NCBI GenBank assembly: GCA_047495785.1
Contig: JBLDXI010000011.1
Location: 1,798,001 to 1,862,000 of the forward strand
Reading direction: 5' to 3'
Length of the DNA: 64,000 bases
Source: Lepidodermella squamata
Taxonomy: Eukaryota > Animalia > Gastrotricha
Shown here: piece after piece, positions 21,073 to 26,163 of the stretch
Numbering within the stretch: position 1 is the stretch's first letter
Layout: the number at the start of each line of letters is the position of its first letter
Position numbers and translations under genes: made by a program
Notes under the pieces: model-generated
Database searches by the model: none
Seen by the model: only the letters and a program-made list of their open reading frames with translations
Told to the model about the DNA's origin: nothing

Positions 21073-21881
21073 TCATAGGCCTAAACCAGTGGAATTTCTT
21101 TCGTAAAAATAAGCATAAACATTTGAGCGGCACGCTTCAGCTGACTCAGCATTTTGAGCTTCTGCAGGCAGTTGATTCCAGAGATCGGGACCGCGATAGC
21201 TAAGGCTCAACGTACCACGAACTGACAAATACGTCGGCTTGAACATTGGCTCAGTGTTACGTGTTGAGTAGCTGCCGACCGGGTTCAGCTTGAAAAGTGT
21301 TTGAATCGCAGCCGGTGCTTGTTTATTCAGGCAATTGTGGATGAATGTCGCCAAATGGATGGCGTGTTTCTGTTGAACGTTGACCCAGCCGAGTCGATGG
21401 CGAAGAGGCTCCGCATCTGCGAGTGAGTGAGCGCCGCATATGATTCGGACGGCACGATCTTGCGTTGACTGAAGCTTTGCTAGAGTAGTCGGTGCTGCCT
21501 GACCTAAGGTTAGGTCACCGTAATTGATATGGCTGAATATCAAGCCATTGGCCATCATGATGGCAGTTTTTCGGTCGACGAATTTCGCAGCTAGTTTGAG
21601 GGCATACAATCCCCGTCGAGCCTTGCTCTTTGCACCTTTGATATGTTTTTTGAAGGAAAGTTTGCAGTCAATGGTGAAGCCAAGAGTGGTCATAACTTTT
21701 GATGGTCCGATAACTGCGTCGCCGATAGTGATGGAAAAATCCGGCGCGGATGGCATAGCACATTTCAAAAGCAAAAACTGCGACTTTTTCCCATTAACTG
21801 CCAAAGAGTTGCTGCTGAGCCATGAGCAAACACGATTCATCTCTTGCTGTAGAACTGATCGTAATTCATTGACATTTCTGC
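21073..21881 (-). pseudogene. LINE ORF2 C-terminal fragment (RT thumb and downstream)
   Basis: WLSSNSLAVNGKKSQFLL..TLGFTIDCKLSFKKHI..SHINYG..QDRAVRII..YSTR..LSYRGPDLWNQLP, typical of CR1/L2-group ORF2 ends. Confidence 0.85.
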
Positions 21882-22354
21882 TTGTATTGTATTAGCTTAA
21901 TTAATTGTTGCGAGGTATTAAACGGTCTGAATAGACATCGCATCTCTGCCTCATTGTTTTGCTTTCCCTCGCCTTTTTACACACTTCGAACTCTTAACAA
22001 GGAGATTTATGCTCAGAAGTAAACAAAACAATCAGCATATTGTCCATCTTAGTCTGGATTTGCAGTGTCAAAGTCCACTTTTTTTGCTGTTCAATGCGTC
22101 ATGGTGGTGGCGGTGGTCGGAGCGGTCGGAGCGGTCGGAGCGGTCGGTGACCGTGGTCATTATTAGCATGAAAAAAATTGTTTTTCTCATCTTCCGTCAT
22201 TTATTGGATTTTCTAAATAAATAAAAAGAGCCTTTTTTGGGGTAATAAATTACTATCATACAAATATGAATTAAAATCTTTGAATCAATCTGAACATTTG
22301 CAGAAGTAATTATGTATTATTGATTCTATAGGTTTCCAGAATTTCTTTCATCAC

Positions 22355-24290
22355 ATGCCGGCGACTTACTCTGAGCCGACCATAGTTGATCAAGATGCAG
22401 CTAGGCGCAGCTTGTCTCGAATGAAGGGCCCCGTTTCATCAATTTCCAACCGATCAGCTGTACATCGAGCTGAGGTGGTGCAGAATCTTTTCTTGCAGTC
22501 GTTACCTGTGGCGTGGCCTTTCAATGCAGCTATGGACGGGGCTGTTATTAAAAAAGCCCAATTAGTTGTAGAATACGAAAACATAGGCGTGGTTGCGTCG
22601 GAATGGCCATTGAAAAACGAGTCTAAACAGGAACAGGCTGGAGAAAAAACGCAGAGGTTAAGGTTGAATTGTCAACTGGTAATATTACAGCTTGATTATT
22701 ATGTTTAGTTTGGTTCGCCTCGGCTTGAAACACGGCATTAATGCTTCCACCCTCATGACCATTAAAAATGAAATTGGCTACCAAAGTGTAACAAAAGAAA
22801 ACTTCTATGGGGTTCGAAAGCGCCTTGCTATGCTTCACCCAATAACATCAACTCACCGTGGATTAGGCGCATATCGCTCGGTAGATTCAATCGTTAAAAA
22901 AATGATTGTTCGAGGCGACTTGGAAAAAGACGTTGTTAATGATCTACGGCTTCAGGTAAATCAAAATTACATATGGTCCTTGCTAGGGCAAAGTCAAATT
23001 TAACAGGTGGATGGCATGGCAGCTAGGACGAGCATGGCAGATGCAACAGTCAGTTCATACATTTGTGCTGCTAAGACAAAGGCCAAAGTGGGCTGCGCTG
23101 GTGAATATCAGCTGTCAATGTACCAGGGAAGCGAATCTTCCGAGATGTTCAGGAAGTTTTTACAGCCAACCATCGGCGAGCTCTCGAATATCGTTCGAGA
23201 TGGCTTGAAGATCGGGGATGATTCTTACGATTTTCGATTATTGGTTTGCTGTGACTACCCAGCTACTGTCAAGCTCTTTGGCTGTGGTCACCAGGGCGCC
23301 GATTTTCGTTGCGTAATCTGTGAAAGGAATATTAAAAAGCTCAATGTCCTTTCGCGGAAACGCCGATTCGACTCATACGAAAATTCATTTAAAGGAAAGC
23401 TTGGTTGGTCGAAAGATTTTGCCCCGATGATTCGTTTGGGTCCTGACAAACTTCTGATTTTACCTGATTTCTTCCACATGAAGGTCAATATTGCTCGTCA
23501 ACTTATTGCTAAAGTAGGTATTCCTTCCAACAACTTGAAAGTTCAATATTCTATTTAACAATAGATCATACGTGTTCTGAAAAGCCATGGGTTCCGCGAT
23601 GCTATGAACGATCTTGTTTCTTTCTTGAAAACCAACTCGAAAAAGCCAAAATTTTCTATCGAGACCAAAGCCACAAAACGAGGTGTCATTAGTGTGCTTA
23701 TCAAAAATTCCAATCACTACGGCATTTCCAAGGTATGAACCTAATTTTGTGTTATATGAAATAAATTAGTTCCTAACTGAAATTTAAACTAGGCATTTGC
23801 TGAATTAGCCAAGAGAATGATTGGAAAGCCTCTATCCGAGTCATTTTTCCTACCGGCTAACTTCCTCAACTCGGTCAAAACTTCAGGTCGTAACACTCGC
23901 AGGGGATCTATTCAGTCTCAAAGCAGCCGTCAGAAGCTACTGCTGTCTTCATTAAAGGATTTGCGAACCTTGTGTCTATCCACCTTGATGGTATTTCGGG
24001 ACATCGAGATGAACCATGTGACGTCAACAGCTAAAATTATGGCTAGCTGCTACGAAAAGATATGGCATCGAACTATTGGACCAGTTACTTCTTACGCTCA
24101 TTTGCTCGGGTGCCATGTTTACGAGCTTCTGGAGAAAGGGGTCGATTTGGCAAAACTCTGCACTGAGAGCATTGAGTTGAGCAACAAGAAAAGACGCAGA
24201 ACGATGGACTGTTCAATTTCAAACAAATACTCCAAACCGTGCCAGATTTTGAAAATCGAAAACATGAAGGAAAATTTGAAGCTGATTTGA
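22355..24290 (+). CDS. RAG1-core/Transib-like DDE transposase (~579 aa, 5 exons)
   Basis: Exons 22355-22656, 22691 (or 22709)-22955, 23007-23513, 23565-23732, 23793-24290 splice in frame with GT-AG. Motifs VDGM, YQGSES, CCDY..G..CVIC, PDFFH, TSYAHLLGCHVYELLE..TESIELSNKKRRR parallel the RAG1 catalytic D, D, CxxC, H, Hx4H and E. Confidence 0.85.
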
Positions 24291-24457
24291 AAATATTTGA
24301 AGTACCTAGAAACTGTGTTTCATTTGATAAATAAAAAGTTTGAACTATGTCATCATGTCATCATTTTATTTCCGCATTAATCTTTGTCGACGTAGCTTTA
24401 TTTCTTCCTCAACTTTGATTTATCATAGGCAGGAGGCAAAAGATCACAGCGTAACCT

Positions 24458-25527
24458 TTACTTGTCAACCTCATAACCATCACGATCAGCATTATAGAAC
24501 AAACGGAACTTGTCCTTAGCGTCCCACTGAAAACGAAACACGCCCGCTCTTATAAGGCGGTGGATCACAGGTATTTGACGGGCAATGGCGCCAGTTGTTC
24601 TACCCAACTCTTTATCGAGGTCACGATCTGTTGGTGTCTTTGCCATCCAAAATTCGATCATTTTAGCTGTAACACTTTCAAATTTTATCCCAGACCTGAC
24701 AACATAGGCGAAACAATGCCGAATACGATTTCTTTCATCGGGACTCCACTCGGTTCTGCTCTTCGTTGATTTAGCTGTGAGATTAAACACTATTTTACAC
24801 AATTTACACAGCAAAACAAAGGCTTACAATTTGAGTAGCTGCTCGCCACATTTTGTATATGGTTCCATGACATTTTGAAAGCATAACTTGAATCTAGATC
24901 GACTCGGTCGCTGTCAGGGACGCTGAAGAACAACGGTCCTGGAGCAAACGAATTGCCTGATTTACCGCTCTTCTTGCGCATATCACGTGAAACCGCTCGA
25001 TTGGATTTAGTCGATTGGGTCGGCTCGATTGGTTCACGTTCATCGGGCTCATGTTGCTCATCAGCATCGTCCTCGCCATCATCCTCGCTATCGTCCTCGC
25101 CATCACCCCCGTCGTCATCCTCGTCATCGCTCTCATCTTCATCCTCGTCATTGTCCTCGTCATCTTCCGATGCATCTTCCTCGCCATCAACAACAGCATC
25201 ACCCACGGCACCATCCTGGCCATCATCATGACCATCGACCTCGTGATCATCTCCGCCTTCAACTCCATTACGCTCCACCTCCATTTCTTGGCCGCTAACA
25301 CCTTCCGCTTCGCCAGTTTTTCGCTGTTTGGCTACCCGCGGCAACTTCAACGCGACCTCTTCAGCAACAGGAGCGGCCTTTCTTCGTGTGCTTGTCTCGT
25401 TTTCTCGCGCACTCTTTCGCCGCGCATTGCTCTGCTTGCGATTGCGATCTTTCTCCTCAAGAATTGCCGCATCTTTTGTGGCTTGAATTGCCGCTTCCTT
25501 TGCTGCGATTTTCCGCGTTTTGGTCAT
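24458..25527 (-). CDS. Transposon accessory protein (~338 aa): basic N-terminus, long Asp/Glu tract, C-terminal Myb/SANT-like domain
   Basis: Exons 25527-24828 and 24774-24458 joined by a 53-bp GTAAGC...CACAG intron, in frame. EWSPDERNRI...ELGRTTGAIARQI resembles the Myb/SANT WxxEE...LGRTxxAI pattern. Confidence 0.75.
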
Positions 25528-26163
25528 GAAAAAAAGAATATTTAAATAAGTAAATAATGGGGAAATAATGCTCACGAGAAATTATTAGATGATAAAAAAT
25601 TCCCGACCTAATCGACCACCCCACCGCCCCGACCACACATCATGAAGCAAAAAATGTGTGGACTTTGACACTGCAAATCCAGACTAAGATGTCAGGGGTC
25701 GGGCCACCCTTTTCCTCACAGTCAGAAGCTACGGCTAAGATAAGGCAAGGGCAAACTTCGTCACCGGTCAAGAGTCTCAGGTCCTGGGCTCATTATCCTC
25801 ATATCCGACTCTGATGTCCCGAGCTATATTATAATCTGAGAAATCAGGGAAATGGAGAAGTTGGCGGCGAGTTCTCACTGCTCGCTGCATAAGCCAAGGA
25901 TTGTTACAAATCAGGTAACAGTCCAACGTTCAAGACGCAGTGGCTAGACGTCAACGCCAACGGGTTTTCAAGAAAAATAATTACAGATTATTTAGTTTTT
26001 ATCACGATAGACATGTTAAAGTCTAGTTATGATCACGATAATTATTTGTATATTACATTCAAAGCTGCTCAATTGTATGAAACAAAAAAAACTAGTAGGC
26101 CGCATCTACAGGTGACAATTCCCGGCAGTGTTAACAACTCTGCATGCATAAACAAATAATAAT

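Follow-up and report, generated by a model that had tools for sequence, protein, structure and literature searches.

To which lineage of RAG1-fold transposases does a compact two-gene transposon belong, and is its second gene part of the transposition machinery? Both questions are raised by a stretch of 64,000 nucleotides from the gastrotrich Lepidodermella squamata (assembly GCA_047495785.1, contig JBLDXI010000011.1, positions 1,798,001 to 1,862,000 of the forward strand; hereafter the window), in which a complete 3.6-kb DNA transposon occupies positions 22045-25691 and encloses two convergent, spliced genes. A first-pass annotation, made from the letters of the window, had described the element as a RAG1-like recombinase paired tail-to-tail with a partner other than RAG2, in a layout like that of ProtoRAG. 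[quoted passage not shown]

Ends, copies and gene models of the element

The boundaries of the element are fixed by comparing the filled site in the window, ..CATATTGTC[element]TCAGGGG... with the right flank TCAGGGGTCGGG, with an empty paralogous or allelic site on contig C29 (locus L056), which reads ..CATATTTTCAGGG.., ..CATATTTTCAGGGTCGGG.. and is 96-99% identical to the window on both flanks; by this comparison the element runs from CA to TG and its TSD measures 2 bp. Duplications of this length were found in four insertions of three families, without sequence preference: TC in the window copy, AA in the copy on C34, and AC and TG at other insertions or families. The arms of the terminal inverted repeats (TIRs) are 41 nt long and 93% complementary, and their outermost 34 nt (CATCTTAGTCTGGATTTGCAGTGTCAAAGTCCAC) are the same at both ends, with zero-mismatch matches on both, which bears out the perfect 34-bp repeats of the first-pass annotation. 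A TIR core, GTCAAAGTCC, is common to this element and the TIRs of paralogous families, and CAT..ATG ends occur in three families.

The host genome that was searched (121 Mb, 151 contigs) contains at least three full-length, intact copies at unrelated loci, on contigs C11 (the window copy), C26 and C34, which are about 99.7% identical and differ at roughly a dozen positions in 3.65 kb, together with a fourth copy on C31 that is interrupted by a nested insertion of 784 bp. Matches to the 34-nt terminus with no more than three mismatches number 42 in the genome, whereas the reversed control pattern has none. Approximately 30 of these 42 loci bear one variant TIR (..GGATATGCAGTGTCAAAGTCCAA), several of them align to the element at its ends only, over about 96 bp (for example G000:C42:706573-706668, C1:3150412-3150507 and C15:3329649-3329744), and in contigs of a DNA run the depth is 4-5 times greater over the element ends than over the interior. 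Together, these observations point to non-autonomous relatives, and the variant-TIR loci, probably short non-autonomous derivatives forming one family, could in principle be mobilised by the transposase. Contigs about 93-95% identical to the element are also present in a run carrying another organism's label.

The two stop-free genes proposed in the first-pass annotation could be joined as described, their stop codons (24288-24290 for the transposase; 24458-24460, minus strand, for the partner) lying 167 bp apart with an AATAAA signal beyond each of them (Table 1). In the transposase gene, removal of four GT-AG introns of 52, 51, 51 and 60 nt (22657-22708, 22956-23006, 23514-23564 and 23733-23792) yields a single uninterrupted frame of 573 aa. 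Introns 1, 3 and 4 combine in-frame stops with canonical splice ends, and removal of intron 2 restores the conserved motif RLQ[VI]DG, which is uninterrupted in the homologues P0002, P0003 and P0005 and in the paralogue L047. The 579-aa protein given previously corresponds to an alternative acceptor at 22690 and a 34-nt intron 1; acceptor 22708 is preferred because the resulting 52-nt intron resembles the other introns in length. All five introns counted in that annotation are thus of GT-AG type, the partner's being confirmed by RNA and the four of the transposase being placed by splice sites, stops and homology.

Transposase coding changes number 5 synonymous and 1 non-synonymous among the genomic copies and 10 synonymous and 2 non-synonymous relative to the related-organism contigs (15:3 overall), and this strong synonymous excess indicates that the transposase is under purifying selection. 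That the element should be an inactive relic or a domesticated pair of host genes is therefore scarcely credible. Transposase transcripts are, it is true, nearly absent from one cDNA-type run, and a T at position 23001, where other copies have G, creates an in-frame TAA, which would act as a premature stop in a transcript that kept intron 2; yet this position lies within that GT-AG intron, and splicing it out recovers a conserved motif, the TIRs, TSDs and reading frames are intact, at least three nearly identical copies sit at unrelated loci, and the empty site matches the window closely on both flanks. Copies, TSDs and frames thus agree with the earlier suggestion of an intact and potentially active two-gene transposon, and the element is very probably a young one that is still active.

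The transposase among RAG1-fold enzymes

The RAG1-like motifs quoted in the first-pass annotation are all present in the order given there and are kept among the paralogues: in alignments of paralogues from the genome (59 matches), D185, D266, C285xxC288, D337/H340, H511x4H516 and E536 are conserved, with C285 and C288 following D266 by 19 and 22 residues. The fold was modelled with AlphaFold 2 on a 258-aa piece from the 3.17-kb two-gene element L047, a paralogue that naturally has exons 2 and 3 fused and is 47% identical to the window transposase over this region. The model (predicted local distance difference test, pLDDT, 76; predicted template-modelling score, pTM, 0.73) shows the canonical β1-β2-β3-α1-β4 order of the RNase-H fold, and D85 and D167 fall at the strand ends where they are expected. 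In a Foldseek search of the PDB, the top 48 matches were all RAG1, amphioxus RAGL or HzTransib (E down to 3e-5), and VIA-align superposed model residues 35-258 onto RAG1 504-808 with Z 12.2 (210 residues, root-mean-square deviation 3.7 Å), followed by amphioxus BbRAGL (Z 9.9) and HzTransib (Z 7.3-8.2), the next unrelated chain reaching at most 5.2. At the level of aligned ranges rather than of superposed residues, this is compatible with equating D, D, CxxC and D-x2-H with the residues that we take to be RAG1 D600, D708, C727/C730 and H795. The predicted N-terminal core thus carries D, D and CxxC on a RAG1-like RNase-H/ZnC2 model and shares with RAG1, ProtoRAG and Transib the pre-RNase-H, RNase-H and ZnC2 fold, and the transposase as a whole shares with them the order of D, D, CxxC, D-x2-H, H-x4-H and E, in agreement with the RAG1-like core proposed at first.

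Such a ranking could be taken to place the element in the Transib/RAG lineage proper, as a ProtoRAG-like transposon in which a RAG1-like enzyme has a different, non-kelch partner. RAG1 and amphioxus RAGL do lead the solved structures ahead of HzTransib, the spacing from the second Asp to CxxC presumably equals that of RAG1 D708, C727 and C730, the neighbours found with a protein language model include RAG1 clusters (RAG1_RNase_H, ZnC2, ZnH2) in mixture with Transposase_21 clusters, and the tail-to-tail layout recalls ProtoRAG. This placement is nevertheless improbable, as the 2-bp TSD recurs in four insertions of three families, whereas Transib and ProtoRAG make 5 bp, and the ends read CATCTTAG instead of the heptamer-like CAC..GTG. 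Moreover, the Pfam RAG1 model (PF12940) has no match anywhere in the genome and matches 0 of 17 exon-3 homologues, and profiles of the N- and C-terminal transposase pieces retrieved neither RAG1 nor Transib from PDB sequences at E values up to 10. Among the predicted structures of the ESM Atlas, RAG1 (TM 0.64) fares no better than the DUF1280 cluster (0.70), Plavaka (0.69) or the plant, fungal and rotifer clusters of Transposase_21 (0.63-0.65), and Transposase_21 is the sole Pfam family that recurs, being matched by 10 of the 17 exon-3 homologues (best E 3.2e-5).

The structural check recommended in the first-pass annotation therefore had a double outcome: RAG1, RAGL and Transib head the PDB list, and the predicted Transposase_21, Plavaka and DUF1280 clusters fit the core of L047 as well as RAG1 does among predicted structures. 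To our knowledge, no structure has been solved for the CMC side, and RAG1 and Transib are the only solved members of the clade; they head the PDB list for this reason, and a first rank for RAG1 is what any CMCT member would be expected to give. The RAG1 likeness of the transposase is hence genuine at the level of the model, yet a character of the whole CMCT clade. Of the ProtoRAG-like interpretation, the convergent layout and the different partner stand, whereas a special kinship with RAG1 and ProtoRAG does not, given motifs found throughout the clade, equal TM scores, Transposase_21 as the sole profile signal and a TSD of 2 bp. What holds of that inference is its cautious suggestion of a possibly undescribed branch of the Transib/RAG/CMC group, the element being a new lineage of a known CMCT kind and not a special ancestor of RAG.

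Members of the CMCT clade share TSDs of 2-5 bp, termini of the form CA..TG and the motifs C(2)C and H(3-4)H (Kojima 2025, PMC12730594); the element has a TSD of 2 bp, begins with CA, ends with TG and carries D, D, C(2)C, H(4)H and E. Within the clade, its TSD, its ends and a weak profile signal place it on the CMC side, whose elements it resembles in the C(2)C after the second Asp, the H(3-4)H before the Glu, the CA..TG ends, the short TSD and the weak, recurrent Transposase_21 similarity, and from which it differs in its sub-threshold Pfam score and its compact 573-aa transposase. For the window copy, Pfam returned Transposase_21 alone, with an E value of 0.0023 and a score of 17.6 bits, below the gathering cut-off of 28.6, and a six-frame genome scan with this model matched two paralogues. 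Alignment by hhalign with a genuine Transposase_21 ORF (open reading frame), L053, paired the second Asp and CxxC (E 2e-4, probability 45%). Hints of DUF1280 among Pfam homologues, language-model neighbours and ESM Atlas clusters are weak, neither the DUF1280 nor the Plavaka (PF18759) Pfam model found a match in the genome, and Pfam and PDB profile searches with the C-terminal piece gave nothing informative.

Relatives outside the host genome are few. A word-indexed protein search gave one match with a single sequence and none with an alignment, a scan of Joint Genome Institute metagenomes found two loci, both short and weak, and the source contigs of P0001 and P0002 are metagenome fragments of 1.2-2.6 kb, too short to reveal a partner gene. 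Standard Pfam and HMMER searches, in short, miss the family group to which the element belongs.

Comparison with named families narrows the placement further. Mirage, a CMC branch with 2-bp TSDs according to its Repbase descriptions, fits the element in this one character. En/Spm elements combine subterminal repeat arrays with a second protein (TnpA, TnpD), as the present element does, although here the accessory protein has a convergent transcription unit to itself and does not arise by alternative splicing; membership in EnSpm proper was rejected, since CACTA ends and a 3-bp TSD would be expected and neither is present. Chapaev elements have 3-4-bp TSDs and invariable CAC..GTG termini (PMC4079192), and with a TSD of 2 bp and CAT..ATG termini the element was rejected as a member. 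Transib proper was likewise set aside on the 2-bp TSD and the absence of CAC..GTG heptamer-like ends, an argument that is strong and not absolute: the canonical Transib TSD is 5 bp, and some newly described relatives depart from it (bioRxiv 10.64898/2026.08.26.747230). From RAG1 and Transib the element also differs in lacking heptamer/nonamer-like ends and any match of sequence profiles. ProtoRAG membership was rejected on the 2-bp TSD, the ends and the partner, a small protein with basic and acidic stretches and a helical domain where ProtoRAG has the kelch propeller of RAG2L.

Similar in its ends is PlavakaB, with CATCA..TGATG termini and 2-3-bp TSDs (PMC12730594), to be compared with CATC..GATG and 2 bp in the element. 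Plavaka and ESTA/CNEST are recently described CMCT lineages of fungi, the latter an example of the CMCT/CMC-side branches that are still emerging (bioRxiv 10.1101/2025.05.19.654958). ESTA/CNEST elements share the 2-bp TSD and are TA-specific, whereas the dinucleotide of the present element varies, and those elements are far larger (at least 7 kb against 3.6 kb) and carry other cargo (TET/JBP). PIF/Harbinger provides a working analogy only, in that a transposase and a small accessory protein with a three-helix, probably DNA-binding domain lie together between the TIRs. Its transposase family is unrelated and its TSD is 3 bp, and the partner of the element is not demonstrably Myb/SANT; with no DDE_Tnp_4 signal found in the transposase by Pfam and a TSD of 2 bp, Harbinger membership was rejected.

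Several points weigh against the placement adopted here. The assignment to the CMCT clade derives from weak profile signals, the TSD and the termini and not from a phylogeny; the CAT.. termini depart from the CAC../CACTA usual in Chapaev and EnSpm; the window copy stays below the gathering score of every Pfam family; and HMMER, run with exon 3 against 1.84 billion representatives, returned 6 fragmentary relatives, none of them named. The core of L047 is nearer RAG1 than HzTransib among solved structures, the fold model spans the N-terminal core, leaving the H-x4-H/E half to its motifs, and the structural analogues of the partner domain described below are weak (Z at most 4.5). RNA proof, finally, covers one of the five introns, that of the partner, the transposase body being almost uncovered in the cDNA-type run X2. 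A bolder proposal, which we regard as unlikely though worth keeping in view, is that the element represents an undescribed, superfamily-level branch of CMCT whose core is structurally nearer RAG1 than that of Transib and which depends on a co-evolving, tail-to-tail DNA-binding partner. The preferred reading remains that of a new CMC-side lineage, of which the convergent, co-evolving accessory gene is the distinctive feature, no description of such a gene having been found for the CMCT clade.

The convergent partner and the subterminal arrays

The partner gene consists of two pieces that are joined into 338 aa by removal of a 53-nt GT-AG intron (24827-24775, minus strand). Run X2, judged to be cDNA because of SMART-type adaptor sequence at loose ends, provides contigs that cover the gene from 24488 to 25632, one of which omits exactly 24775-24827; the partner is transcribed and spliced according to the gene model. 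Its product is basic in residues 1-80 (21 K/R) and acidic in residues 81-175 (50 D/E), and a linker leads to a conserved domain of 104 aa (residues 235-338), for which AlphaFold 2 predicts five helices followed by a C-terminal β-hairpin (pLDDT 88). No significant match and no kelch domain were found for the protein in Pfam or among PDB sequences, and Foldseek with the domain returned nothing from the PDB at E ≤0.001 and TM values below 0.4 from the ESM Atlas. The best fold analogues, at no more than Z 3.2-4.5, are three-helix domains solved in complex with DNA: the Myb-containing domain of TEBP-2, homeodomains, Myb, TRF and GT-1. The modelled domain may on this basis be a probable homeodomain/Myb-like DNA binder, short of assignment to the Myb/SANT group. 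The partner is clearly not a kelch RAG2, as had been proposed from the window alone.

A further question is whether this gene belongs to the element at all, or is a passenger, that is, a captured host gene or unrelated ORF in a transposon that functions with one gene. The partner does evolve faster than the transposase, with 9 synonymous and 16 non-synonymous changes relative to the related-organism contigs, chiefly in the linker and the acidic region, and it belongs to no recognisable family. Its C-terminal domain, however, is kept, and always convergent, in at least eight paralogous families, whose transposases are as little as about 35% identical, and ten residues are invariant in the alignment of eight families. 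The domain recurs 21 times in the genome, and no copy was found among these hits away from such elements: apart from C15, C54 and C73:250470, all hits sit immediately 3' of a transposase homologue and are encoded on the other strand, C15 being a degraded copy of the element and the other two being weaker hits. Partner identities of 62, 55, 46, 44, 44, 36 and 34% accompany transposase identities of 67, 67, 56, 53, 53, 55 and 42% in the same order of families; that the two fall together argues for co-divergence within element lineages and not for a passenger. The gene is, moreover, transcribed and correctly spliced, and its domain is lacking in the remoter transposase clades L048 and L051 (30-36% identity), as expected of a lineage-specific accessory gene. 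A passenger origin is accordingly highly improbable. Since every paralogous family examined with 35-67% transposase identity retains the convergent gene, the partner is an integral accessory (helper) protein of the element lineage.

Candidate targets for such a protein lie inside each end, where clusters of short direct repeats occur 55-100 bp from the terminus, behind a T-rich spacer (Table 1). In the element, six of the eight GGTCGG occurrences fall within the two subterminal arms. Related families have arrays of other motifs, CGGTCG in L043 and CTTGGT(G/C)AC in L047, with all four occurrences within the arms in each case. An array that is constant in position and shifts in motif from family to family is what would be expected of sites co-evolving with a family-specific DNA-binding protein.

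A mechanism can be proposed on this basis. The transposase would act as a DDE enzyme of RNase-H fold that has both zinc-binding modules of the clade, one (C285xxC288) following the second Asp and the other (H511x4H516) preceding the Glu. By analogy with RAG1, Transib and CACTA elements, it would pair both CAT..ATG ends, cut them, and insert the element with a 2-bp stagger. The C-terminal helical domain of the partner probably binds DNA, most plausibly the GGTCG-type arrays inside each end, and could thereby aid recruitment or assembly of the transposase, comparable to TnpA of En/Spm and the Myb-like protein of Harbinger. For direct contact between the two proteins, complex prediction with core pieces of a paralogue and the partner domain that belongs to it ended without an answer (score 0.00) and speaks neither for nor against binding.

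Setting of the element and wider meaning

The coordinates of the features are collected in Table 1. Immediately left of the insertion, a 255-aa ORF (21073-21840, minus strand) resembles the C-terminal part of a reverse transcriptase of non-LTR (long terminal repeat) retrotransposons, and further copies of the flank, 80-99% identical, occur on C29 and C11, which indicates that the element inserted in or next to repetitive DNA.

Table 1. Features of the transposon, with positions numbered from the first letter of the window.
Feature	Position	Strand	Description
Target-site duplication, left copy (TC)	22043..22044		filled versus empty site
Left TIR	22045..22085	+	begins CATCTTAG; first 34 nt equal the right end
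Left subterminal array	22108..22150	+	four tandem GGTCGG(AGC); putative protein-binding sites
Transposase gene, 573 aa	22355..24290	+	five ORF pieces joined by GT-AG introns
Transposase exons	22355-22656, 22709-22955, 23007-23513, 23565-23732, 23793-24290	+	gene model
Transposase key residues	D185 (23010-12), D266 (23253-55), C285/C288, D337/H340, H511/H516, E536 (24174-76)	+	
AATAAA signal, 3' of transposase stop	24330..24335	+	sequence
AATAAA signal, 3' of partner stop	24365..24370	-	sequence
Partner (accessory) gene, 338 aa	24458..25527	-	exons 25527-24828, 24774-24458
Right subterminal array	25603..25635	-	three GGTCG(G), inverted relative to left
Right TIR	25651..25691	-	closes ..CTAAGATG
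Target-site duplication, right copy (TC)	25692..25693		empty-site comparison

Further observations concern relatives and transcripts of the element. The insertion that splits the copy on C31 (L004, G000:C31:390178-390961) interrupts exon 5 at a position equivalent to window 24032-24039 and, with its perfect TIRs of about 31 bp (CTTGGGACTAATACTGTATGGACTCGACACT) and 8-bp TSD (TAATTTTA), looks like a small non-autonomous element from another superfamily; a second, partial copy on the same contig (C31:403703-405362) covers the right half of the element. The distant transposase relative L048 (G000:C32:25857-33399; about 36% identity in the exon-3 region) is flanked by 224-nt inverted repeats 7.1 kb apart, and no homologue of the partner domain was detected in it. 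At L053 and L054 (G000:C42:58506-58910 and C42:1366028-1366432), an intron-less 568-aa ORF exceeds the Pfam Transposase_21 threshold (36.8 bits for L053) and contains the motifs DG, CVDT..ACHKC and HxxxH; judged by its sequence, it represents a second, more conventional CMC family of the host genome. Run X2 covers positions 22091-22240, which comprise the left subterminal region and the leader, about as deeply as the partner gene, and one contig stops at 22240, directly past AAATAAATAAAAA, and continues into A's and adaptor sequence. This end could reflect early termination of a plus-strand transcript upstream of the transposase ATG; a chimera from assembly or adaptor would account for it just as well.

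For genome annotation, the host proves to hold several families of 3.2-3.6-kb two-gene elements together with elements reduced to their ends. Beyond Transib and RAG, no transposase of RAG1 fold is known to have a solved structure, and few active members have been characterised. The present element is compact, apparently intact and represented by few young copies, its helper gene is conserved and its subterminal repeats are defined, and it thereby offers a tractable candidate for the biochemistry of the CMC side. It also permits comparison of the independent recruitment of accessory proteins, with RAG2, TnpA, Myb-like proteins and the partner described here as cases. If the superfamily-level interpretation were true, the element would constitute an independent, second two-component transposase of RAG1 fold and could inform how RAG1 came to require RAG2; if it belonged to the Transib/RAG lineage instead, it would bear directly on the origin of the RAG1-RAG2 pairing.

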